64,000 bases of DNA from Magallana gigas (lineage: Eukaryota). Positions 25,235-43,600 of this stretch are shown in pieces (position 1 is the stretch's first letter; the number at the start of each line of letters is the position of its first letter). A program made the translations under genes and the position numbers. The DNA is taken from NCBI RefSeq assembly GCF_963853765.1, contig NC_088855.1:49600001-49664000 (forward strand), read 5' to 3'. Under the pieces are notes generated by a model, which was given only the letters and a program-made list of their open reading frames with translations, searched no databases and was not told the origin of the DNA.

Positions 25235-27310
25235 AAATAAAGATATTTGTAACAAAATGCACAAGTAGCTGACTACATAAAAAGAGATATCTGAGTACCT
25301 GTGTCGTAATATTATGTGGATGACTTGAAGGAATGTTAATCTAGCAAGTATAGCATATATCTTCAATTTAAATATACAGCTACTTGAGATATATTGACAA
25401 AACCGCCAAAAAATGAGGATATTTGTAACAAAATGCACAAGTAGCGGACTAAATCAAGAAAGATATCTGAGATATTATGTCGTAATATTATGTGGATGAC
25501 TTTTAGAAATGTTGATAATAGCACGTCTGGCATATATCGTCCATTTAAATATACAGCTACTTGAGATATATTGACAAAACCGACAAAAAATAAAGATATT
25601 TGTAACAAAATGCACAAGTACCTGACTACATAAAGAGAGATATATGAGTAACTGTGTCGTAATATTATGTGGATGACTTGAAGGAATGATGATAATAGCA
25701 TGTCTGGCATATATCTTTAATCTATATATTCAGCTACTTAAGATATATAGACAAAACAGACAAAAAATAAAGATATTTGTAACGAAATGCACAAGTAGCT
25801 GACTACATAAAGAGCGATAACTGAGAAATTGTGTCGTAATATTATGTGGCTGACGTGAAGGAATGTTGATAATAGCATGTCTGTCATATATCTTCTATTT
25901 AAATATACAGCTACGTTGGATATATTGACAACCCCGCAAAAAATAAAGATATTTGTAACAAAATGCACAAGTAGCTGACTACATAAAGAGAGATATCTGA
26001 GTAATTGTGTCGTAATATTATGTGGATGACTTGACAGAATGTTGGTATTAGCATGTCTGGCATATATCTTCAATCTATATGTACAGCTACTTGAGATAGA
26101 TAGACAAAACAGCCAAAAAAGAATGATATTTGTAACAAAATGCACAAGTAGCTGACTACATAAAGAGAGATATCTGAGTAATTGTGTCGTAATATTATGT
26201 GGATGACTTAACAGAATGTTGATATTAGCATTCCGGCATATATCTTCAATCTATATGTACAGCTACTTGAGATATATTGACAAAACAGACAAAAAATCAA
26301 GATATTTATAACGAAATGCACAAGTAGCTGACTACATAAAGAGAGATATCTGAGTAATTGTGCCGTAATATTATGAGAATGACTTGACAGAATGTTGATA
26401 TTAGCATGTCTGGCATATATCTTCAATCTATATATTCAGCTACTAAAGATATATTCATAAAACCGCCAAAAAATAAAGATATTTGTAACAAAATGCACAA
26501 GTAGCTTACTACATAAAGGGAGATATCTGAGTAATTGTATCGTAATATTATGTGGATGACTTGACAGAATGTTGGTATTAGCATGTCTGGCATATATCTT
26601 CAATATATATATTCAGCTACTTGAGATATATAGACAAAACTGACAAAAAATAAAGATATTTGTAACGAAATGCACAAGTAGCTGACTACATAAAGAGAGA
26701 TATCTGAGTAATTATGTCGTAATATTATGTGGATGACTTGACAGAATGTTGATATTAGCATTCCGGCATATATCTTCAATCTATATATTCAGCTATTTGA
26801 GATATATAGACAAAACAGACAAAAAATAAAGATATTTGTAACGAAATGCACAAGTAGCTGACTATATAAAGAGAGATATCTGAGTAATTGTATCGTAATA
26901 TTTTGTGGATGACTTGACAGAATGTTGGTATTAGCATGTCTGACAAATGTCTTAAATATATTTGTACAGCTACTTGAGATATATAGACGAAACAGCAAAA
27001 AGATAAAGATATTTGTAACAAAATGCACAAGTAGCTGACTACATAAAGGGAGATATCTGAGTAATTGTGCCGTAATATTATGTGGATGATTTGACAGAAT
27101 GTTGATATCAGCATGTCTGGCATATATCTTTAATCTATATGTACAGCTACTTGAGATATATAGACAAAACAGACAAAAAATAAAGATATTTGTAACGAAA
27201 TGCACAAGTAGCTGACTACATAAAGAGAGATATCTGAGTAATTGTATCGTAATATTATGTGGATGACTTGACATAATGTTGATATTAGCATGTCTGACAT
27301 ATATCTTCAA
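25235..27310 (-). repeat. 177-bp satellite array, right arm, inverted, about 12 monomers
   Basis: Reverse complement of the left-arm monomer; minus-strand ORF translations mirror the plus-strand ones. Confidence 0.93.
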
Positions 27311-28504
27311 TCTATATATACATTGTACAATCTATATTATTGACAATTGGCAGTGATATAGTGCAATGTACATCTTAAGAACACAAATAGAAATCCTTGG
27401 TATGTGTTCTTACATTGACAGTAAGAAGTAACTAGAAGCCAAGTTTCTTTCATCTCGTAGCCAGTTACTAGTAGCTAGCTTTTCTTACTTCTTTTAGCCA
27501 GTTACTAGTAGCCAGTTACTAGTAGCCAACTTTTATTTAATCTCGTAGCCAGTTACTAGTAACTAGCTTTTCTTAGTTCTCGTAGCCAGTTACTAGTAGC
27601 CAGTTACTAGTAGCTAACTTTACCTATCTATGATTAACAACTCTAAACTATAGTTCACGAATGCAAATTGTATCTGATAAATATAGTTTCACAATCGTGA
27701 AACTATATTTATCAACTCTAAACTATAGTTTACGAATGCAAACTATAGTTTACAGATGTGAATCTATATTTATCAGCAAAATCGTTGTTAACGTGCATTT
27801 CCTGACAGAAAAACATAGATTTGTATTCGTAAACTATAGTTTACAGATGTGAAATATAGATTAACATCGGTAACTATAGTTTAGGATCCGTAAACTATAG
27901 TTAACAGCCGATAAACCTAGTTTATCGACTATGAAACTATGTTTTGCTAATTTATGTGAATTTGGCGTGTTTTAGATTTGTAAACCGTAGTTTACTGATC
28001 ATAAAACCCTATTTATCAGATAAACTATGTTAAACAACCGCAAATGATTGTTTTCAGTGTTAACTATAGTTTACAGGTGTGAAACATAGATTATCGCGTT
28101 AACTATAGTTTACAGATGTGAAATATAGATTAACGTCGGTAACTATAGTTTACGATCCGTAAACTATAGTTAACAGTCGATAAACCTAGTTTATCGACTG
28201 TGAAACTATGTTTAGCTCATTTTTGTGAATTTGGCGTGCCATAGATATATGACTAACAGTTATAGATAGATACACAATGTAGGTATGAAAAAATGTCATT
28301 CATATCTCTGGTGTAATTTCAATGTTAACGTAATAGAACAGAAAAGATGGTCATAACAAACTATTTTTCCATGATTGCGCATAGTTAAGTTATAATGTAC
28401 GTTTAGATTCTCTCTAAAACGGAGGGGGTGGCTTAATAATCATAGATCCGCCCGCCATCTGCAGTTACTCTCAAGAGGGGTTCCGATGAGAAAAAATGCA
28501 ACGC

Positions 28505-28615: not shown

Positions 28616-31600
28616 ATGGCAACACAGAATACTAACCCTGCTGCCCAAACAACAGGAAGGAGCAAGGACATGTCCAGCTCTTCAAATCAAGCTCGAGATA
28701 ACCACTCGGTCAGCAAACGGTATGTCATATAACAACGATTTTCATAAAACGGTGTAAAAGATAAATGTTATCAGTTTGTTGAAATATTGAAATAAGTGAG
28801 AAACAGGCAAAATATTACCAATGAACATGGTGAAAGCAAATTAATAAAATTTCTAGATATGTCTCAAATCCAGTACAGTTTCCCAGTGCGGCAATTTTGT
28901 AACCCGGTTACACAAGGATGAGAAATGATGATCCTTATGTAGAGTCAAAAAAGAATCAGGTATATCTTAGATAAGGTAAATCATTTAAGAAAAACTTATA
29001 CAAATTTGTATAAGAGAGGGAAGACCATTGTTTTAGAGAAAATCTCCGAAACAGAGTTCCAAGGGTTACGAGGGTAACAGACCCTTGTTTCTATATAAAT
29101 CTCTGTTCTGAAACAGGGTTACAAGGGTTACAGACCCTCGTTTCTATACTAAGCTCTGTTCTGAAACAGGGTTACAAGGGTTACGAGGGTTACAGACCCT
29201 TGTTTCTATAGTAAGCTCTGTTCTGAAACAGGGTTACAAGGGTTACAGACCCTTATTTATATACTAAGCTCTGTTCTGAAACAGGGTTACAAGGGTTACG
29301 AGGGTTACAGACCCTTGTTTCTATAGTAAGCTCTGTTCTGAAACAGGGTTACAAGGGTTACGAGGGTTACAGACCCTTATTTCTATATAAATCTCTGTTC
29401 TGAAACAAGGTTACAAGGGTTACGAGGGTTACAGACCCTTGTGTCTATATAAATCTCTGTTCTGAAACAGGGTTACAAGGGTTACGAGGGTTACAGACCC
29501 TTATTTCTATAGTAAGCTCTGTTCTGAAACAGGGTTACAAGGGTTACGAGGGTTACAGACCCTTGTTCATATACTAAGCTCTGTTCTGAAACAGGGTTAC
29601 AAGGGTTACGAGGGTTACAGACCCTTGTGTCTATATAAATCTCTGTTCTGAAACAGGGTTACAAGGGTTACGAGGGTTACAGACCCTTATTTCTATAGTA
29701 GGCTCTGTTCTGAAACAGGGTTACAAGGGTTACGAGGGTTACAGACCCTTGTTCATATACTAAGCTCTGTTCTGAAACAGGGTTACAAGGGTTACGAGGG
29801 TTACAGACCCTTGTTTCTATAGTAAGCTCTGTTCTGAAACAGGGTTACAAGGGTTACGAGGGTTACAGACCCTTGTTTATATACTAAGCTATGCTATTAG
29901 ACAGGATTACAAGGGTTATGAGGGTAACAGACCTTTTTTTCTATACATATCTATGCTCTAAGACAGGGTTACAGGGATTATAGCAGACCATGGTATCTTA
30001 TTGAATTGTATCTATCTGAACCATTGAAAGAGTTACTAACTTTTGATTCATACTGTCCATTTCATTTCATTTCACTTAGCATTTTACAGTAAAGTCTATG
30101 TGTAGCATCCGATTTGTATGATTTGAATTTCAAACAAATATGTGGTAGCGAAAATTTCCATAAACTTGGAATGTTAATTAACATATACTACATATTTTTT
30201 TTTGTTGACAAATTGAAAATATTTAATTTTCAACAAAGATAACATTTCATAATTATATCATCATCTGAGTTCATATCACTTTCATTGATTAATCTCTATA
30301 AATATTCTTTGACTCTTCTAAATTTTCTTTTTCATGAAGTAAAATTCAAACTGTTATAAAAAAGAATCCAACATGAATTTTAATTAGTGTCTCTACTTTA
30401 TCTCTTCAATATTTTAGATTCCAATATTAAAAAAAAAAATACCTGCTTAAAATTTCATTACTTTTCATTGCATTTATATATAAATAATTGCTAAATGGTT
30501 AAATTCAATGAGTCCTTGTTCTGCTGTGACCTTTCTCCATTGTTTTTATGTTTCTTCAGTATTAGTATACTGTGTATAGATGGTTAATCAAAAGTGTCTA
30601 TAATTGATATCTTTTTTCATCAGAATTCTTTGATACAACCACTTTGAGTCTCCTTTTGCCCACTTTTAAAGATTGATATGTCAAAGTGTTTTGCAGTCAG
30701 CTTTTTGTTGATATCTTTTATCCATTAACTATCATTGCACCCTACATGTGACAAAATACAATAGAAATAATTGTATCAAAGAAGAAACATGTGCTGTATA
30801 TTTTATTATACATAATTGCTCGGCATGCCACATAACATACAAACACAACAGAATCAGTTAAATTAAAATTGTTGAATAAATAGAATTGTTTAAAATACAT
30901 TTTAAATATAATAAATGCTCTTCCAATCAACAATAACTGAAATATAGATAAATGATTGTTGACATACACATGTTAACATTACGAGTAACAATAACTCGTA
31001 CATAGTGAACTGTAAATAAAAAATGAACATCAACAATATTAAATCCAATCAACATGAACAGAATCATAAGCGGTTAATATGATATGTATTCTGATAATGA
31101 TCTGTTCATGTTAATTCATTTAGTAAATCTAAAAAAAATCATAACTTTTTTGATGGTTACAAACAGAATTTTTCACAAGAGGTCATAATTCCAGAATAAG
31201 GGGCAACACTCAGTGGCAATGTCTGCAGTTCCAGGGATTTCCTCCGATGGTTTTGTACGCCTGTACGGAGATCCCTGCACAACTCCGATGGTACCACTGC
31301 TGGCATCCATCACAGCAAAGCCAAAGGAGGCCTCTTCTCCCTTTCTTTCCACAAGTGGCACAAAGGTCCTTAAAAAAAGAAACCATACTTTACTAATTTG
31401 GCACACTCTCATCTAAATCAGCATTTAAATCAAATCCTACGTTTTTCACGTAGTGAATTCCCCATATACACACATTCCTATATTTTTATAACTATACTGA
31501 GTACAAGACTAAAATGAATAAAATGGATAACAACATTTTCTGATATGCCAATTAAACTCGATCTGCTTTATTATATACTTATGTATGGAATAAGAAATCA

Positions 31601-34600
31601 TTCTTTGGGGTGACAAGTTAAGTCCAGAGTGTGGTCAAATCCAATAAATTAAGCCTGAAGGACTTTATGCTAGATTCGACCATGCTTTAACCAAAACTAT
31701 CACCTCATAATAATGACACCTCATTACTTGGTTATATTTCCAAGTTCTTCACTTTAAAACAACATTTCAAAAGCACTATGATTTTATGTAGCACATGCAA
31801 AGTATTACTATGCGGCGCAGCCAATACAAATTCTTGCTTATATTATAGGACATGCCCATTTTGTGTTGCTCATCTTTTATAAAATTATTGGGCTATAGGC
31901 TTCAAAATTGATTTGTAATGTTATCACTAACAAAGACAGTTGAAATGGAAATATTGTATAATTAAGCTTTTAGAATGTGTTTTCATTAAATAGTGATCTC
32001 TCACATCAAATTGATCTAAACATTCATTATGTTAGTGGAAGCATTAGCATACTTACACTCATCGGTACCCTCTGAACAGACTCCAGAGGCAGTCTGGGTG
32101 GGGAGGGGAGGGGCTCATCTGCTTGATGTCCTTCTTCTATTGGGGTGCCCATGTCCACTGACATATTCCCCATCATTTCAATGAATGGTGGGGGTGGAAA
32201 GTCATTGGAGATTGACCCATTTAGTGATGGTAGAGGTGGTGGTGGTGGAGGAAGGTCACCCATGTCAAAGGAATCCTGTTCCGTGTCCGGGGTATCTACT
32301 ACAGAGAATTATTATATTCGTTAAATTTTCTTCAGAGTTTAACTATTATGAAGATCAATAGCTCATGTTACTTCAATATTAAAGTGTCACTACTAGATTT
32401 GGTGTCTCTAATCAATTTGCATTGTTATCATTCCATTTAAAAGAATTGTCTTGATGATTTAATTTTGAGCCCAACTGTATATAATTATAATTTCAAATCA
32501 TGTTACCATTGTCCTCGATCTCTGGGAAGGTTGTTTCCCTCACTCTGCAGGTTTCTTCAACTTCAACGTCAGATTCTACAAAAACAAAAAAAATGGATAT
32601 CAATGATCTGTACACTCTGTTTTTAGTCAAAAAAAGAGCAGCACATTAAGGAGGATTGATGGTCAACAAATTAACCATCAGATCTACCTTAAACTTTCAC
32701 ATCTGACAATATGACCATAAACTAATATTGAGAAAAGTGAAAAAGTCGAATATTTATGCTTTCAAATTTGAGCATAATGCCATATATCATACTGAGAGAA
32801 GGTAAATATAACCTAAAAACGGACACTATTCTCCAGCCCTCTGAACTAAGAGTAAAAGATTGGGGTCTATTCTGAACAGAGTACCACACTAGATAACTGA
32901 ACAATTGGGTTTCTTTTTTAAGTCATGAATCAATTGCAAAAACACTTGATTGAGACAAATGATTATAATTTCAAATCATGTTACCATTGTCCTGGATCTC
33001 TGGGAAGGTTGTTTCCCTAACTCTGGTTTCTTCCACTTCATCGTCAGATTCTACAAAAACAAAAAAAATGGATATCAATGACTTGTACATGCTTTGCTTT
33101 TAGTAAAAAAATGTGCAATATCGAGGAGTTGTATGAAAAATCTCAAAATTATTTTCTATTCAATAAAATATAATTCCTCTGAAGGAGCTCATCATAAGAA
33201 CAAATGCATGAAACTTAAGTGTACACTACTTCTTATAAGATCATCATAAGGAAAATTGAGACTGCTCTATAATATGGTTTGTGTATCTCTTTTAAATTAC
33301 AAGCTGACCTTGATGTAATATATCACACTATAAAGCAAACAATGAATCTCTGTTAGGAATTACCTGAGGTAAGGCATCGAATGGTGTCTTCAGATAAAAC
33401 ACTCATGGGGATTTTCGCGACTTTCCTCACTTTCCCCATAATCCTCCCTGATTTGTTGATCTCTGCCCCAGGCGTGTTTTTTAGGACAGCAACCACTTCA
33501 GAAACTGCAATGTTCAAAGCTGCTGCTGCTCTGGCCTTGTCCAGCAGGACGGAGTCCTCCAAACATCTGAGGATGTCTTTTTTCTCCTAGAAAATTGAAA
33601 TATAATGTAAGAGAAGGTGGATATGTTTGGATAAATATGGCAGATATAATCATTACTTTTAAAGTGTATTTTATGACCTTTTAATATTTATTAATAAAGA
33701 CATGAACTCACATGTTGGCACAACCCTCCAAGTTCTTTCAACATTCGATTTGCTGCTTTGGATGGTTGGTGGTTCAAAGTTGTATTTTCGTGGTAGGGCA
33801 GCAACACATCCTTCACATATGCCCTGACTTGCTGCCACAAATGCCCTTTCTCTGTAACCTCCAGCATCTAAATAAAAAAATTAATGCATTAATTTTCTGT
33901 CTATTACTAGTACTGGTATATATTTTCTCATGTTCAGCTTTTAATGAGGCCGACTTTAATTTTCACTGCCTGTGGTTTTGCCTTATCTAATGAAATACAG
34001 TGTATTTATACTTTTTTTTATGAATTTTTTCCTATATCACTCATAAAATTAAAAGTAAGTAACAAAATACAGATAAAAATACTTCGATTTGGAAAGGGAA
34101 AATGTTCTTTCAAATGATTTTTCCAGTGTATGGTAGGTGAGCATTGCCATTGTGTTTTTGACATTATGATAAAAAGATTAAGCTTCGAAGTACGTTAAAG
34201 GAAATAACACAACAAAATATGTAAACACATATTTCAATTTGAGGAAAATCACTTGTTATGTATGCAGCTAAGGCCATTGCAATTTTTTTCTTTGTTTAGC
34301 GTCCACCCAAAACTCAAAAACCTATCCTGGCCTATATAAGCATAATGTTATCTTGTAGATTTTATATAAATTAACTGGAATACAAATTAAAATTTTTTAT
34401 ATCAATTCAACAGGTTTTTCATTACCTTTTTGCAAATAATCAGAGGGAGAGCAATGCCCTCTGCAACTCTGATGTCCAGTCCTTCCAGATAAGACAGCAA
34501 TCCCGATGTTACGTTTGCAATCTCCTCCGCTTCAATTTCGCTGGCCATCAACTTAAGGGAAATGAAAGCAGAGGAGGCTGCAATTGCTGCCTTAGTAAGA

Positions 34601-37600
34601 ACTGCAAAGGTGCCTGGTTGGGGGTTGGCCTTGGGTCTTAAAAAGACTATGACGAACAGCCTGGAGTGATACCTTCAAAATTAAAAGTATTTCATTAGTA
34701 AGAGATTACCGGTATTAAAATTGTCCCAATAACAATTTACCTGGCCAATGTTTTACATCATTTTCTTGTTTTTTGTTCAACTATGATATAAACCTTCAAA
34801 ACTGTTTATTCCATGGAAGGCAGGAGCCTTATTTTTGAAAACCATTGAAGGCCTTAGCAAAATGCTGACATTTTTTAGGAAAGTTATGGTTCATCATTTT
34901 ATTGTATTTGGGCGACAGTTTTTATTTACCGGTACTTATGATGCATAATATCTTGAATAGGACTGGCCAATCATTATAACTATTTACCAACACTATACAG
35001 TATCAACTATTTTTTAAAGCCCTCCCAAATTTCAAATAATCTCTATAAATTATTGTCATTCATTGAAAAAAAATAGTAGTTTTTGACAGATAGGACATGC
35101 TTACTTTTCCATCTGATGGATGTCGAAGTTGGCTGTCACAAGGCACGCTGTCTGAGGGAACTGGTGTCCTCCCGATTTTCCCCTTGCTGCACCATTGGCC
35201 AAGTCCACAGCAACCTGTTTGACATCTGCTACTGAAGTAGGGTCATCCCATACAAAGGGAAGGGTGGACTTAGCAAAAGCATCCGTCAGATAGGTTAGGG
35301 TATCTCTGAAAATGATACATTGAAGTCAATATTTAAGGTTACATTCAAAACAAAAGCTTGAATAAATACTTGAACGACCTCAATGGTTAATGCATCAAGT
35401 AATAATGGCATGGAAGTTGGATATATCCATGTACTTATCACTTTACCAGCTACAATTGAAAACTAAAGGATAAAAAATCCTAATCAACATTTTACTACCG
35501 GTATTTTTTTGTCTTTGGTTTTTTTATATATATTTTTTTAAGAACTAGTTACCAGCAATAACTATAACAAAGTAGAAAAAAAATCATGTTCCAAGTTTTT
35601 GTGATTATTAGTGATTATTAGGTCATTCTGTTTTATATCATATATTGTTAGAGTCAGATGTGTAAAAGGTTTTTCTAATTACCTGCTGGTGATGGATTCA
35701 TCCAAGGAAAGCCCACTGAAGAGTCCTGCACACTGTGCAACCAAAGTCTTTCCTACTTTAGGTGGTCCAAATAGAAGGGGGAGGTTAAAATGTCCCAACT
35801 TGGCCAAGATGTCTCTGCGAAGGACGAAAAAAAGTTTTAGTCAATTGCATACAGTAAATGTATACCATATTGTCTTAAGGGGCATGGTCTTGATTTTGGT
35901 CAAATTCTATTTTTTCTGTTTACTTACAATGCTTTAGGAATGCATTCCCAATATTCAAATGAAATTTGAAAGTCAGTTGTAGAATTATAAGCAGGATACA
36001 TGGCTCACAGTTTTTGTCAAAGCTCATATGCCCTGTTTTTGTTTACATTATATGTTCAATATACCTGTATAAAATCTAGAAAATCATTTTCAAGCTAATT
36101 TGCATATCTTCTTAATAAATTTGAACATAAAAAAACAGGTCCTTATGTTTGACACATTGATTTTAGGTGTAAAACTGGAATTTTAACTTCAACATTAAAA
36201 AGTTAAAGCTTTGTTTACATAGCAAAGAAATGTAAGCTTTGTAACTTTCAGAATGACACTTAAATGTTGGTTGCCTATTAAAATGCCTTTCGAAGCGTAG
36301 TACAAAAATCAAAATTGATAAAATAATTTTTGACCAAAATCGTCACCATGCCCCTTTACGAAAAATTATTGTCATTGAATGTAAAAGCCACATTTCCAAA
36401 TCAAGCATTTCAATGTTTCATGTATCTTCTTTAATATATTTATCTGGTTTGCTTCAGATAAGATTAACACACATCTCTGGATAAAACCTGTTATTGTTTT
36501 ACAGACACCATCTTTGATCTTAACAATTAAAGCAAATGCTTGTGTCCTTGACACCCCCCCCCCACACACTTTATAATAAATCTGTCAACAGACAGTAACA
36601 AATCATATACGAATAAATGTAAATCCTGACTTAATGTACAACAATATTTTTTCTGTTTTAAGGTTTAAGGTTGACTTTATTAAACCTGATATCTTATAAG
36701 ATGAAAAAGCTGTCATTACTAGATTTACACATTCTCAAGTTTTTAATTACCTGTAGTTTGCCATCATCAGCATGCAACTCAAAGAGAGCAGGGCTGGGAC
36801 AAAGTTGTCTCTTAGTTGTGTGTGTGCCAACTCTATGAACCTTGATAAAGGATTAAGGCCAGGAGGTTCGGCAAACTGTCTGGCCATTCCTTGGGGTGGG
36901 CAGCCAGGCCATCCTGGTATCCACATGAATGGGTTGGAAGCTGGTGGAATCTTAAAATAAATGGATTGAATTACTATTGGTTTTAGGAGGCTACATGCTA
37001 TTTCTAGTAGTTTTTTAAAATTATAAATTTTATAAAAAATGAGATACACCTTTATTTATATATTGACATTTCTGTACAATCTGGAGTTGAACCATTCGCT
37101 AGCTTGCATGTGAATTTTAAATTTTTTAATAATTTTAACATTTTGTGTTTGTAGATCATCTTTCAGTCACGTAAATAACCCCCAAAATTGACAAAACTGA
37201 AATTTCCGCAACCTTATTGCGCGTCATTTTATAGCCCTAAAACACCCCAAAACATATTCCAAGAGATGATTTAATTGTCTATTGTTGAAAATGTAGGAGT
37301 AGTTTGAGGAAGGAGGTTTTTTGGTGGAAAAAAGTCATTTTATACCAATCATTTGACCCCAAGACTACAGGTACTAGAGAATTTTTGAAACCTCTTTACA
37401 AAACAACATGCCAAACTATATTGAACTCTAGGAGTTCAGTTTGCTGGTTTATAAGATGTAAGAGCAGTTTGAGAATTCGTCCTCTATTTCGTCCAAGATA
37501 CAGAATTTACACGTGCGCTCAGTGGGAGGTATATCATCAAGTCCACATGCTTTAGAATTGCCAATTAGTATACTTACTGATCAAGAATACCCTGATCACT

Positions 37601-40600
37601 TACATACATGTATATGTATTCAAAATTAGGAAAGTCATATTTTGGAGGTCCAGGATCATGCATGTTCAGGCAAGTTTGATTCATTTCAATATGATAAATA
37701 CTTAAAAAAAGAAAGTACAGTGTATTTAGTTTTTGAGCAATATCAATGCGATGAATCAGTTTTCTTCCATTATGAGTTTTGAAAGGGGGTGGGGGAGAAT
37801 TTTTTTACTATAACCTACCACTCTTCTGTTGGAAGGACTTATCAACAAGTTATGAAACCGTGCAGTTGCTTTATACCCTCTCCTGCTCTTTCGCACCAAA
37901 TCGAAAACTTCATTAAGCATGTTAAGTAACTTTTGAAATTTCTGCCAATGTATTAAATTTGGATGTTTTTGTAATTTTTGCTTTTTTGTGTATATTGGTT
38001 TTCTTTGCCTCATTTTCTGTAGAATTTCTGTTGTACAGGCCTTATCAGTAGGGCGTATTGTAGTTTGTTTGGTGTTTGTTTATAACAAATGACGTAATAC
38101 AATATATATAAGATATAAAGTTTTGATTTACATCATTGATGTTATTACAATAGTTAAACACTGATTCATACCAGTTTATATTCAGTAGGTCATCATAATT
38201 TGGACCTTGATAATATATGCCATATTGTAGTTTCTTCGATGAAATGCTAGTTGTTTATATATTATGTTTATTTTTAAGAAAAATTTCTATAATTAGTAAC
38301 AAGCGAGTATTACATAATTAGGTTCATATACAATTACATTTTTTGACTTTGTTAGAATCATTTGTTTGTACTAAGTAAATACAAGTGCACATAAAATTTT
38401 GTAAAATTTGAACATTACCGGTACTTATATTCATGCAGTCTTTGTAAAAGATGCTTATATATATATAATGAATTAATTATTTCCAGATACATTAAATATT
38501 TACATTTAATCTCACTGAAAGAAGAAATAATTTCATTAAATTAGTATCCTTTGCTCTTTCTGTGTTACTGGTTACTTTCAAATTACCCAGTACTAAATTG
38601 ATTTCAATTATTTCTCTTAATCTAAGCTTACCTAAATCCATTTATATTCCTGATCAGCATTCTTGTTTATAAGATATATGCATGGAAAGAATTATTCAAA
38701 AGCAAAAAATATAAAAATTAAAAAAAATAAAAAAAAACCTTAAGTTTATGCCATGTTACTAGCTAGGGTAGTTATCGGTAATCAAATTGTCTGTAAGAAA
38801 TATTTAATTTGTCTCTTGAATGGATTGATCAAGCCAATCAGCAACTTTTTTTTTTAATGGAGGCTGTGTAATTTATCTGGACATTATACAGTGTTAAATT
38901 AGCATTTTTAAAGTTTTCACTGTGCAATATTATCTTATGAAGATTGGGACCAATGTTATATTTAGATCTGGTGACTTAATAGTTAAAGGAATGATAAATA
39001 TAATTTTTTTAATTGGTATTGATAATCCATGTAAGCTCTTAGAAAAACTTTTTGATTCTACTTCTTTACTGTTGTGAAATATGGGGAGTGGATCTCTCAT
39101 TGAAAGATATTTCACTTATCGAAAAATTTGATGTAAAATTTCTTGGATTACATTGCAAAGCATCTAATGCTGGTTGTTTGGCAGAATTAAACAGGTTACC
39201 ACTTTGGTCTAAAATCTCATTCTCAAGCATTAAATATTGGAATCACTTGATAACGTCTTATTCTTTGGCATTTAAATTATATCTGGGATTGATCAATTCC
39301 AATTCCTGGACTAAGAAAATTTATGGCATCCTAGATAATTTGGGATTCTCAAACATTAGTAATTATAAAAGCACAATTCAACACTTTTTACCAAACATAA
39401 AGCAAAGATGATCATTGCAATTGACCAACTGTATCCAAGTAGATATATGAGCAATCATCAAAAATTTTTAGTTCAGAAAAACTTTCATTTTTTCAAAAAT
39501 TATATATGAGAAAAAGAAGTCCTTATGTTGATATACATTATAGAGATCCTCTATTAGTAGAATAAGATTAAGTGCACATAAACTTGCAATAGAAAGTGGT
39601 AGATTTAATGCCACATTTAGGAATGAAAGATATTGTAATGCTTGTAAAACTGCTGCAATTGAAGATGAAACTCATTTTCTTTTTCAATGTAAAGCCTATT
39701 CTCATCTAAGGAACAGGTATTTTAGTAATTTTTAAAAGATAATTAAAATAAATATTGCCAATAACTTGCACAAAGAAAGATACATTTACATGTATGTTTA
39801 AATAGTGAAATACATACTATTCTAAAAGTTACTGTTATTAATAAATTCATTAACTTTTGAACACAGATATCAATTAGTCTAAGGAAATGTTAAACTGATA
39901 TATATAGATCAGTAAAAATATATATACTGTACATGCATGTAGTTATTGTAAACATACAATGATGTTCCTATATATCCATTGGGCCTTAATTGCCAATTAT
40001 TGTAATTGAGTTTGTGCCAATAAAATATTTGTATTTGTATTTATCATATTTAAAAAAAAATTGAAGCTAATAATTGCATGTCAATGCAACCGGCCAGAAC
40101 CCTTTACTGAAAACAGCAGGGCATTATAAATATTTTTAATCGTTGGATAAAAATTAGTTTTATAATATGTGATGAAAAAAAAATCTAATTTTCCTTACCT
40201 TAAGATATATTGCATTAATGGCTCCAGGTTTGTTGTGACCTATCTCACAGACTGGTGACAATGATGATAGATGCAAATTGTACAGAGGATAAGTCTATGA
40301 AGTTCTCTGAATATCTTTCATCTTGCAAGTTGAAAGCCATTGATGTGTACATCTCCATCACAAGATAATTCACGTAATGCTTTTGATGAAATAATTTTCA
40401 CACCTTTACATTGTCTTCTTCATCTCTGCTTTGTTCTGCTCAACGAATCCGTAATATACAAACCCGTGTTAGTTCATATAAAATGGATTAGCATTCTTTC
40501 ATTTAGCAAGTTAAAAGCTATTATGTGTACATCTCCTTCACAGGTAAATTCAGGTAATGCTTCTGAGGGTCAACCAATTTCACACCTTAAGAGAATACCC

Positions 40601-43600
40601 GCTTTTGTTCTGCTGACCATGCAACTCGCAACAAATACATGTATACACAACACCTGTATTTTCATTTTTAAAAGAATTGAGAAAGTGCATTAAATATTTT
40701 ATTGAGTTTTGATTGAAGATGTAAGGAAATAAACTTAATTTATTTAACAATTATTATTATGAACAGTTATATTAATTTTTTAATTTTAATTGCACAAATT
40801 ATAAATGATAGCCTAATTTAAAGTCTGTTATCTTGTGTTCGATACCTCTGTTTACCCTGTTTCAGAACAGAGATTTATATAGAAACAAGGGTCTGTAACC
40901 CTCGAAACCCTTGTAACCCTGTTTCAGAACAGAGCTTAGTATAGAAACAAGGGTCTGTAACCCTTGTTTCTATTGTAACCCTTTTTCAAAACAGAGATTT
41001 ATATAGACACAAGGGTCTGTAACCCTCGTTATATTGAAACAAGGGTCTGTAACCCTCGTAACCCTTGTAACCCTGTTTCAGAACAGAGATTTATATAGAA
41101 ACAAGGGTCTGTAACCCTCGTAACCCTTGTAACCCTGTTTCAGAACAGAGCTTAGTATAGAAACAAGGGTCTGTAACCCTCGTTATATTGAAACAAGAGT
41201 CTGTAACCCTTGTAACCCTTGTAACCCTGTTTCAGAACAGAGCTTAGTATAGAAACAAGGGTTTGTAACCCTCGTTATATTGAAACAAGGGTCTGTAACC
41301 CTCGTAACCCTGTTTCAGACCAGAGATTAGTATAGAGACATGGGTTAGTTAGTATATACAGAATTTCAAGCATGGTTGAAGTTAAAATTAGGAAGGGTAA
41401 ATATCATATTGGTTTGGTTTCGTTTGTAACTGGGTTACAGAATTGCTGCACTGGGAAACTGTACTGTATTCTTGCCATATATGAAAATTTCACATGGCTC
41501 CTATGATAAAAACATGTAATTTGCCATTAACTTTTTTCCAATTTAATGATAATGATTTTTTAAAATTATAACAGTTATCTATTTCATGTCTACAAGTTGA
41601 TTTTTTATTAAACAAGCTCAATTTTTTTTTCAGACTTCAACAAGAACTCATGACTTTATTGGTAAGTAACAATGTAACAATCATGATATTTTTTTTCGCA
41701 ATCATTTCTCTCTGTCTTCTCACGGGCCGCCAATAAGCCGTTAAATGTAGGGGATGAGAGAGAGAGAGAGAGATCGAGAAATGTACACTATCTACGTGTG
41801 TATATCATTATAGATAGATAGATAGGGTATATATCTCTCTCTTTGGAATTCCCCTATAGTATAGCCTATTTATAACGGCTTATTGATAAAAATTCAGAGG
41901 CCTGTCAGGGCATAATATCCCTAGCATGCGGGTCCTGTAAAAGGACCCACTTCCAATTGAAAATTGACTGTTTTATTCAAAATCTAATTAAAAATTCCAA
42001 AAATAACTGTTTCGTATTGTTTTATAAAAGATAGGATGCTGATTTTGATGCTATACTGACTCGAGTGAAACATCCTTATATGTGTCAATTAAAATATTAG
42101 AGTGTTCTGTTATAAAAGTATGGTTTACTATGATTAAAGCATTAATTTAATGATTAAACGCGTAATATGCAAATGAAAATCAAAAAAACTGTATAGAATT
42201 TTTGGTTTTTTTGCTAATTTGCATTGAGCCTTATTTGTTAAACTATTTTCCCAAAAAAGCAATATTTTGACAAATTCCCAATTGAAAGGGTACAGGACCC
42301 AGTCCCAAAAAGGGTCAATTAAACCCTTCCTTTGGTCTTCTCTGATTGATATACTTTGTTGCCCAAATGACTTGTGATGTAAAATACAATTAATATTGCC
42401 CAAGCATTGAAAAGTGAATTCTTCATGATGACATTTGAGAGCTGTACTGACCACCGGATATGCAACAAAAAATGGACACGCTCTCTTATCCTTTGTTAAA
42501 AAGATTTAAAATGACAGCATATTGATAATGATAAGAAATGAATGCTTGAACAGAGAATGTAGATTTTAGGTGTTTTTATATGTATGAGTAATGACATATC
42601 AAGAGATATGATTAAAGAAAATTAACTTTTAGTGGAATGAAGAGTTCTTTATAGTATAAAGAGCTCTTAGACATTAGTCTTAATCAAATCTGTAGGGATG
42701 TAGACAATAGTACACCTTGTCAGCTACCGGTATATGACATTTTATAATGTTCTTGATTTTAACAAGTTTTGACAGGTCAGTAATGCATTGGTTATCTTCT
42801 TATGAATACTCAAAACATGGTTCATTCATACACCATTGTAATTTGTTTTTAAGGCTTTAATCAGGTATAGGTGCATCTACACAGTTATCATAAACATGAT
42901 ATCAAAGGTTCCATTTTCTGGTTATTTGGTGAATGTGAAAATGGGGCAAGAAAATTGTGAAAAATAAAGTGTGACTGTGTCACTACCTCAGTATGCAACA
43001 CACCTAAGAAGAAGCGGTTTGTTCCCGTTTTGCACACATTTGAAAATTAGGAATCGAAAAAATGTGTGCGAAACGGGAATTTGACCAGGTGAGATAATTG
43101 CTTAATTGCTATAGTCTATATCACAATTCCCGCGAGGGCAATTGACAATAAAAGAAAAAATACATATCTACTCGCAATTGAAATTAACATGTATTTTATG
43201 TTACAAATTATATAACTTGCATAAAAGCACATTTACATAATAATTGACATCCATATTCAAGAATTTGATTTCAAGCATCAATTTGGTCATGAACAATTTC
43301 ATTATTTTTTTTTAAAAAGAAAGATTATTGCAAAAATGTTGAATATGTAGCGCCTTTGTTTAACTTAATGCCTATAGGAAGTACATGTACATGCTAAAAG
43401 TTTGAAGAGAAAATATCTATATGTTAATATTTAATTATAATTGCTTTTGCTGACATAAATGGAAGAAATGTGTCTTGTGAAAACGCTGCTAAATATTTTT
43501 CATTTATGTTGTGTTATATCTTGAATAATTGAAGAAATTAGACAAACTGTATGATGATAAATAGGCAATTTTATATGCATGCTTCAAAAACTGTAAAGAT

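Follow-up and report, generated by a model that had tools for sequence, protein, structure and literature searches.

How does an animal genome come to hold an intron-bearing gene that joins an ATPase resembling the replication helicases of bacterial mobile elements to a chromatin-reading PHD finger? We examined this question at a locus of Magallana gigas, using a stretch of 64,000 nucleotides (contig NC_088855.1, positions 49,600,001 to 49,664,000), hereafter the window, in which positions are counted from its first letter. An earlier note, made from the sequence alone, had described here a prokaryotic or viral mobile-element enzyme that acquired introns and a histone reader in an animal. Our analysis indicates that this helicase-PHD gene is probably a passenger of a bivalve transposon that bears terminal inverted repeats (TIRs), of the KDZ (Kyakuja-Dileera-Zisupton) type, and that the window holds a 5'-truncated copy in an internally deleted element. 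As part of this reading, and equally probably, the gene codes for part of a ring helicase of the Cch and SaPIbov1 Rep kind (DUF927-like, related to MCM and superfamily 3, SF3), namely its ATPase core and its C-terminal half. The earlier interpretation is supported as regards fold and domain architecture, but the gene is better filed as the passenger of a bivalve transposon.

Six-frame reading and splice-site inspection yielded ten exons on the minus strand (31210-36950; Table 1), each preceded by an AG acceptor and, except for the terminal exon J, followed by a GT donor; the low-end donor of exon I (GTAAGT) was picked from the sequence alone. Joined, they form a 1,695-nt frame without an internal stop, and the resulting 564-residue product reproduces the one reported earlier, including every motif string quoted there. 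We found 23 public sequencing runs containing the gene stretch, seven of them RNA, and compared contigs of four runs with positions 31150-37100; these are assembled contigs, from which levels, strands and transcript ends are not readable. Among the matches listed, RNA-library contigs confirmed at least five of the nine junctions as GT..AG joints (34669/35102, 33867/34426, 33050/33364, 32575/32985 and 32298/32507), bearing out the claim of spliceosomal introns. One contig of 778 nt comprised exons E, D and C in spliced form, and another joined D to C with the B-C intron retained. A further RNA contig matched exon A exactly, with no mismatch, and carried 233 extra letters upstream and 23 downstream that lie outside the compared stretch. 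An upstream exon beyond exon A thus exists, at a position outside that stretch, and since exon A itself starts at an acceptor, the 564 residues represent a 5'-incomplete product.

Exons G and H belong to a duplicated segment of ~150 bp (67 + 86 nt; 32481-32635 and 32959-33110), whose copies are 84-96% identical and lie 475-478 bp apart. Each copy consists of an acidic exon of 66-69 nt with flanking intron, and RNA contigs show both exons spliced into message. Some RNA contigs have a joint consistent with skipping of exon G or H.

The encoded protein reads, in order, Walker A, Walker B, sensor-1 and arginine-finger motifs, a helical region, a conserved module, two acidic mini-exons, a proline-rich linker and the PHD finger. 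Walker A, Walker B, a B'-like motif, sensor-1 and the arginine finger are all intact. The Walker A lysine, Walker B acidic pair, sensor-1 asparagine and finger arginine match near-invariant columns of the family, and their catalytic roles were assigned by position and from established motif knowledge. The C4HC3 zinc-ligand pattern can be read directly in exon J, which matched PF00628 over the full profile (positions 1-47; 38.1 bits against a cut-off of 24, E 1.6e-9), in agreement with the canonical PHD finger reported before. A tryptophan precedes the histidine ligand (QQWYH), a resemblance to H3K4me3 readers that is suggestive only. In the model of a homologue, the exon F module forms a beta-hairpin and a helix and may be a DNA-binding domain. 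Full-length family members have an additional beta-rich N-terminal domain of ~170-280 residues. Pfam searches with single exons gave only P-loop noise, the PHD finger excepted.

Searching the 69 residues of exon C against 1.84 billion representative proteins recovered 28 relatives at E<=1e-3, mostly exon-sized fragments. Spread and copy number, on which the earlier proposal could be judged, came out narrow and low. Across word-indexed searches with longer homologues and a family profile, all named homologues were bivalve: Crassostrea, Saccostrea and Ostrea among Ostreida, three Mytilus species (Mytilida), Mya (Myida), Mercenaria (Venerida) and Tegillarca (Arcida). Within this genome, exon C matched four places. 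Residues 1-563 of the window product align with Saccostrea LOC133198484, PHD included (29% identity, E 6e-74), and the alignment with Mya LOC128217159 runs end to end (35% identity, E 3e-65). The gene, its splicing and its protein homology are not explained by chance. A second paralogue, on C9, is 55% identical to the window gene and is the orthologue of annotated Saccostrea, Ostrea and Crassostrea gigas genes. Orthologous contigs of the window's own subfamily, sought in other species, yielded short metagenomic fragments only and no usable loci.

Several annotated models of the family join or divide genes wrongly. In C. gigas, XP_019920676.1 (P0029) begins with an HscB/DnaJ-like N-terminus. 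In Ostrea, LOC130047675 (P0035) fuses exons of a KDZ gene to the helicase, while the C-terminal half of the helicase and its PHD are assigned to the neighbour LOC130047614 (P0062), of which one isoform is called 'mucin-7-like'. The Tegillarca model P0038 ends short of the PHD exon found at L026 29999-30190. Carriage by a transposon would explain why several 'uncharacterized LOC' models of oyster, clam and mussel genomes are faulty in this way.

The window gene lies inside a TIR element bounded by perfect 8-bp target-site duplications (TSDs; Table 1), and comparison with copies on C10, C6 and C7 placed the true ends at 28854 and 41483. Both ends are kept by a deleted copy on C10 and by gene-less copies of 1.7 kb on C6 (C6:27299396-27301144, TSD TAACAAGC) and 3.1 kb on C7 (TSD CTGGGAGC). 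The C6 copy consists of roughly TIR, array, inverted array and TIR, a foldback-like arrangement, and is likely a non-autonomous derivative. The terminal words TAGATATG.. and ..CCATATATG are common to the window element, a 31.4-kb element on C9 and elements of Ostrea and Saccostrea. Ends of the Tc1/mariner kind (TA plus CAGT..) were considered and rejected, as the element reaches 17 bp further out and has 8-bp TSDs. The family of 62-bp arrays occurs at ~20-25 genomic loci. On C2 (28954338-29028554) the 62-bp unit recurs every ~7.6 kb over ~75 kb, a pattern that suggests a higher-order tandem repeat of units containing this transposon's array.

A complete relative of this element harbors the C9 paralogue. 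It spans 31,445 bp (C9:1911301-1941745), ends in 40-bp TIRs and is flanked by a TSD of 8 bp that is likewise perfect (AAAAAAAG); its terminal 15-mer, TAGATATGGCAAGAA, is related to the window termini and common to subfamilies and oyster genera. Inside are, in order along the gene strand, a CxC5 open reading frame (ORF; 33.5 bits against a Pfam cut-off of 26.9), KDZ-like exons, a full helicase-PHD gene with its N-terminal exons, a 128-bp tandem array and the terminus. By Atlas features, the KDZ-like gene of this type scored 0.97 to KDZ clusters. The Ostrea edulis gene resides in a 27.8-kb element with the same termini as the C9 element, a TSD of GCTACCTA and a CxC5 ORF upstream. A homologue of that ORF precedes the Mya helicase gene, between inverted arrays, and in Tegillarca the upstream gene codes for a 680-residue CxC5 protein with a KDZ-like C-terminal region, with a heptamer array downstream. 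In all four (C9, Ostrea, Mya and Tegillarca), the transposase-like gene lies upstream of the helicase-PHD gene in the same orientation. A whole-genome scan with the KDZ hidden Markov model missed the C8 and C9 loci, both of which were recovered with Tegillarca protein queries. At C10:4639001-4645968 we observed a second copy, 97% identical, which continues beyond the stretch compared. Of the C9-type gene it has the 3' end, with the PHD exon and what follows it, together with the 128-bp array and the terminus.

TSDs of 8 bp occur in hAT and P elements too, and the foldback shape would suit P. Both were rejected, given that no such transposase was found and a CxC5/KDZ-like gene was. Like KDZ transposons, the bivalve elements combine 8-bp TSDs and TIRs with a CxC5 cluster and a putative KDZ-like transposase gene; 8-bp TSDs are reported for Zisupton elements (PMC12730594). 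Fungal KDZ transposons carry TET/JBP passenger genes (PMC12730594), and the bivalve elements likewise carry a chromatin-related passenger, here downstream, although it is a helicase-PHD protein instead of a TET/JBP dioxygenase. Unlike known KDZ elements, they end in long heptamer-rich tandem arrays, have foldback-shaped gene-less copies and are hosted by bivalves. We found no report in the searchable literature linking KDZ/Zisupton elements, or any eukaryote, with a DUF927-type helicase. Within that literature the protein family is new for eukaryotes, and the element is a variant of a known transposon kind.

Could the helicase-PHD gene instead be a domesticated, bivalve-specific host gene, located between TIRs incidentally or through repeated capture? 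The four exon C matches amount to a low copy number, the NCBI annotation of several bivalves lists single 'uncharacterized LOC' genes, and the gene has ordinary introns and expression, all as a host gene might. However, the two subfamilies, only 29-55% identical, are both found in elements that are related to one another, share the terminal 15-mer and have their own cognate arrays as well as perfect TSDs, and the order of KDZ-like gene, helicase-PHD gene and array recurs in Ostreida, Myida and Arcida. Moreover, the TSDs of the Ostrea and C9 elements differ and hence mark separate insertions, not one old locus. We consider domestication improbable and favor a transposon passenger.

What kind of ATPase does this passenger encode? 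Foldseek, run with the second AlphaFold2 (AF2) model against PDB, ranked Cch (5dgk) with probability 1.0 at E 4.5e-3 and returned nothing at E<=1e-3, so the fold class was settled with a full fold search by a method other than Foldseek. There, Cch and SaPIbov1 Rep stood 4-5 Z units above RavA, MCM, BchI, RFC and p97; the ATPase region shares their fold, clear of other P-loop classes. Against BFVD, a collection of predicted viral structures, there were ten matches at E<=1e-3 (best 9e-6), all named ones from tailed phages; the named matches, together with those just below the cut-off, included Toprim, 'active helicase' and DUF927 proteins. For the ESM Atlas model of Ostrea LOC130047675, the nearest entries by language-model features (0.96) were DUF927 clusters, and by structure they were DUF927/Toprim primase-helicases of phages and Bacteroidota (template modelling score 0.78-0.80 over ~327 residues). 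One family member matched the PHROG 'DNA primase/helicase' (E 4.3e-5). Aligned by hhalign, the family and the C-terminal modules of phage primase-helicases stay colinear over the N-terminal domain, every ATPase motif and the C-terminal module, with weak significance (P 2e-4). The Pfam DUF927 model gave no match to the window exons or to full-length bivalve homologues, and the distant 160-residue member P0022, from a metagenomic eukaryotic contig, scored 21.6 bits against its cut-off of 22.6 (E 2e-4). The Cch/DUF927-like module proposed earlier is therefore supported at the level of the predicted fold, where Cch and SaPIbov1 Rep lead the search, but formal membership in Pfam DUF927 does not follow. 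An AF2 model of Ostrea residues 140-490 (pLDDT, the predicted local distance difference test score, of 48) was too poor for searching.

Another P-loop class would make the Cch likeness superficial: the ATPase might be a regulator of the TnsC, MuB or IstB type, or a classical AAA+ unfoldase. An AAA+ partner beside a transposase is a familiar arrangement, exon B has weak AAA and Mg-chelatase matches, and the profile search of PDB sequences matched only P-loops of the p97/VCP type (E ~5e-3). Those matches, however, span just 23 residues around Walker A and were set aside as uninformative, no TnsC, MuB or IstB appeared among the top 50 chains of the fold search, and both the 4-5 Z lead of Cch and SaPIbov1 Rep and the colinearity of N-terminal domain and C-terminal module with phage primase-helicases point elsewhere. 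We regard this alternative as very improbable; the unrelated P-loop class that the earlier note had named as counter-evidence did not lead the fold search.

DUF927 is part of Cch, a relative of SaPIbov1 Rep, and both are self-loading initiator helicases of mobile elements (PMC7581432). The two staphylococcal DUF927-type proteins, Cch of the SCCmec cassette (PDB 5DGK) and Rep of the pathogenicity island SaPIbov1 (PDB 8TCH), share only ~11-12% sequence identity with the bivalve protein. Unlike theirs, the bivalve genes have spliceosomal introns, a long acidic/proline-rich linker and a PHD finger, and are carried by a eukaryotic cut-and-paste transposon; the window copy, moreover, has no N-terminal domain. 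The nearest predicted structures are the C-terminal helicase modules of Toprim/DnaG primase-helicase fusions of phages and Bacteroidota (for example Flavobacterium phage 23T and the 'active helicase' of Microcystis phage Mae-Yong924-2), although the bivalve proteins have no primase domain. SF3 helicases (large T of SV40 and JC virus, poxvirus D5, PrimPol of African swine fever virus) and archaeal or eukaryotic MCM are clearly farther away than Cch and SaPI Rep, and their flanking domains are absent from the bivalve protein. TnsC, MuB and IstB form a different structural clade, yet a similar logic is possible, in which an ATPase encoded beside the transposase chooses or prepares target DNA; by this analogy, the PHD finger could give the bivalve system chromatin targeting.

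The subterminal arrays may bear on how such a helicase might be used. They contain TGTA(A/C)CC heptamers spaced 9-10 bp, always on the sense strand of the gene, in the window and in the C9, Saccostrea, Mya and Tegillarca loci; the left array of the window has 27 on that strand and 0 on the other. Each of these five informative loci has a long array at a distance of 0.5-3.4 kb downstream of the helicase-PHD gene, and their ~25 further arrays are without the motif. The Ostrea element is nearly devoid of arrays. The heptamers are most likely subterminal transposase-binding repeats and, less likely, iterons for the C-terminal module of the helicase. Short tandem arrays at 27003-28209, to the left of the window element, do not have the motif. 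The most distant family member, P0022, sits between inverted arrays of a 31-bp repeat (TGTCTACCC-like units; L011 1207-12785) on a 2.77-Mb eukaryotic contig assembled with hifiasm-meta (ENA), a layout that is the same as that of the bivalve elements.

If the heptamers were iterons, the protein could load itself and initiate replication, as SaPI Rep or Cch2 do, and the elements would replicate, for example as excised circles, in addition to cut-and-paste movement. Initiator helicases, the closest folds, have origins of short iterons directly downstream of their genes (PMC7581432). The sense-strand arrays of the five loci likewise lie downstream of the gene, with the motif missing from the ~25 others. 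Yet TIR transposons ordinarily have subterminal repeats to which their transposase binds, and these elements have a transposase-like gene. In addition, gene-less short copies retain arrays and still show TSDs, the Ostrea element is almost array-less, and no primase or polymerase is encoded. We give replication initiation a low probability. A related and equally doubtful proposal is a hybrid element, a KDZ cut-and-paste transposon with a captured initiator of the phage/SaPI type. In such a hybrid, the C-terminal module would bind the TGTA(A/C)CC iterons at helical-turn spacing, self-load and unwind the element ends; the PHD finger would couple unwinding to a histone mark; and the element would replicate, or prime its own repair after excision. 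If true, it would give the replication modules of SCCmec and SaPI a first counterpart among eukaryotes.

Returning to a passenger that serves cut-and-paste transposition, the full-length protein would, by analogy with Cch and SaPI Rep, act as a hexamer that uses ATP to move along DNA in the 3'-5' direction. Its PHD finger may tether it to histone H3 tails, and the helicase may aid the transposon either at the array-bearing ends, where it would unwind or remodel the DNA, or in the choice of chromatin targets. This accessory role would be comparable to that of the TET/JBP passengers of fungal KDZ transposons, and among the functional options we give it about an even chance.

The window copy itself tells a different story from that of the complete elements. 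A copy on C8, 97% identical to the window gene, keeps two exons of the N-terminal domain upstream of exon A, whereas the homology of the window to it stops at 36992, 42 bp upstream of that exon. Starting at 36988, the window sequence corresponds instead to the element end on the transposase side, which on C8 is 171 kb away and adjoined by KDZ-like exons. This switch in homology at 36988-36992 marks the window element as an internal-deletion derivative. No exon of the N-terminal domain was found in the whole 64-kb window by hmmsearch of six-frame translations, and the C8 and C9 copies have them. As its sequence reads, the window element has lost the transposase-like gene and the N-terminal exons of the helicase and is non-autonomous. 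The C8 copy has a stop at codon 28, has lost 72 nt of the Walker A exon and has a Cys-to-Ser change at a PHD zinc ligand, so this nearest sister is a pseudogene. The two copies diverge by 1.6% in exons and 1.56% in introns, with 9 synonymous and 17 non-synonymous differences; given this equal divergence and these counts, the intact frame of the window copy is no evidence of constraint. With the N-terminal domain gone and the nearest sister a pseudogene, the window copy is most likely a decaying remnant, not a working helicase.

A shortened functional product from this locus is nevertheless possible: if the copy is alive, a protein of ATPase core and PHD might regulate or inhibit the full-length protein or the element. 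Its 564-codon frame is open over ten exons, where the C8 sister has a stop and a deletion; all its catalytic motifs fit the family consensus; and spliced RNA contigs match the window copy exactly, including the stretch deleted in C8. Against this, an open frame is expected by chance at a divergence of only ~1.6%, and neither the 17:9 ratio of non-synonymous to synonymous changes nor the equal exon and intron divergence indicates clear constraint. We hold such a regulator to be unlikely, and keep to a remnant.

Several observations weigh against the overall reading. The window element itself has no transposase, and in the C9 element the KDZ catalytic match is weak (17.2 against a cut-off of 26.6 bits). 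The Mercenaria loci showed neither a PHD exon nor arrays. As for the helicase, no family member reaches the DUF927 (PF06048) cut-off of 22.6 bits, a six-frame scan of the whole genome gave no DUF927 match at E<=1, and tblastn of the distant member against 50,697 phage records returned nothing below E 2. The AF2 models are of low-to-middling confidence (pLDDT 48 and 56) and represent homologues, not the window protein. Finally, for a remnant, the window copy has a fully open and spliced frame, with an RNA contig joining exon A to an upstream exon.

Within our searches and the searchable literature, helicases of the Cch/DUF927 type are otherwise known only from mobile elements of bacteria, archaea and phages. 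In the bivalves, this fold would belong to an animal gene that has introns, adds a histone reader to the helicase and travels on a KDZ/Zisupton transposon. A eukaryotic transposon would have put to new use a replication protein of prokaryotic mobile elements, and KDZ elements, otherwise known for chromatin-modifying passengers such as TET/JBP, would have a second type of chromatin-linked passenger. The complete two-gene element of 31.4 kb, its gene-less derivatives and the defined end repeats offer a testable system for asking what use an ATP-driven motor is to a cut-and-paste transposon.

Table 1. Features of the helicase-PHD gene and its transposon in the window.
Feature	Position	Strand	Description
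Whole TIR element	28854-41483		12,630 bp; ends common to C10, C6 and C7 copies; 8-bp TSD
Left TSD copy	28846-28853		AAAATTTC, repeated at 41484-41491
Right TSD copy	41484-41491		AAAATTTC
Left terminal inverted repeat	28854-28912	+	Pairs with 41425-41483
Right terminal inverted repeat	41425-41483	-	Pairs with 28854-28912
Left subterminal array	29045-30087	+	62-bp unit, ~16 copies
Right subterminal array	40813-41336	-	62-bp unit of left array, inverted
Exon J	31210-31368	-	C4HC3 PHD finger and stop codon; Pfam PF00628, E 1.6e-9; splicing frame
Exon I	32057-32298	-	Acidic and poly-proline linker; RNA joint 32298/32507
Exon H	32507-32575	-	Acidic linker, duplicate of exon G; RNA joints on both sides; direct repeats D8/D9
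Exon G	32985-33050	-	Acidic linker; RNA joints 32575/32985 and 33050/33364
Exon F	33364-33586	-	C-terminal module, kept in Mya, Saccostrea and Mytilus proteins
Exon E	33712-33867	-	Helical region after the ATPase; RNA joint 33867/34426
Exon D	34426-34672	-	Strand with the arginine finger (KYHSRLFV), helical lid; RNA joints at either end, family alignment
Exon C	35105-35305	-	Walker B (FVWDD), B'-like loop, sensor-1 (VTAN); most conserved family columns
Exon B	35683-35814	-	Walker A (GPPKVGKT); weak AAA and Mg-chelatase P-loop matches
Exon A	36751-36950	-	Helical region before the P-loop; opens at an acceptor, hence not the first exon
Deletion junction	36988-36992		Homology to C8 copy ends; homology to transposase-side end of element begins
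Nested non-LTR (long terminal repeat) retrotransposon, 3' fragment	37289-39732	+	Reverse transcriptase thumb-like region, C-terminal CxxC..HxxxxC zinc knuckle; ORF fragments

The nested retrotransposon fragment is foreign to the element proper and mostly absent from the C10 copy. ORFs in 36992-41483 were considered as genes of the element and rejected as retrotransposon debris. The whole window includes 176 N bases, and the last ~380 bp of the retrotransposon fragment match ~40 other places in the genome.

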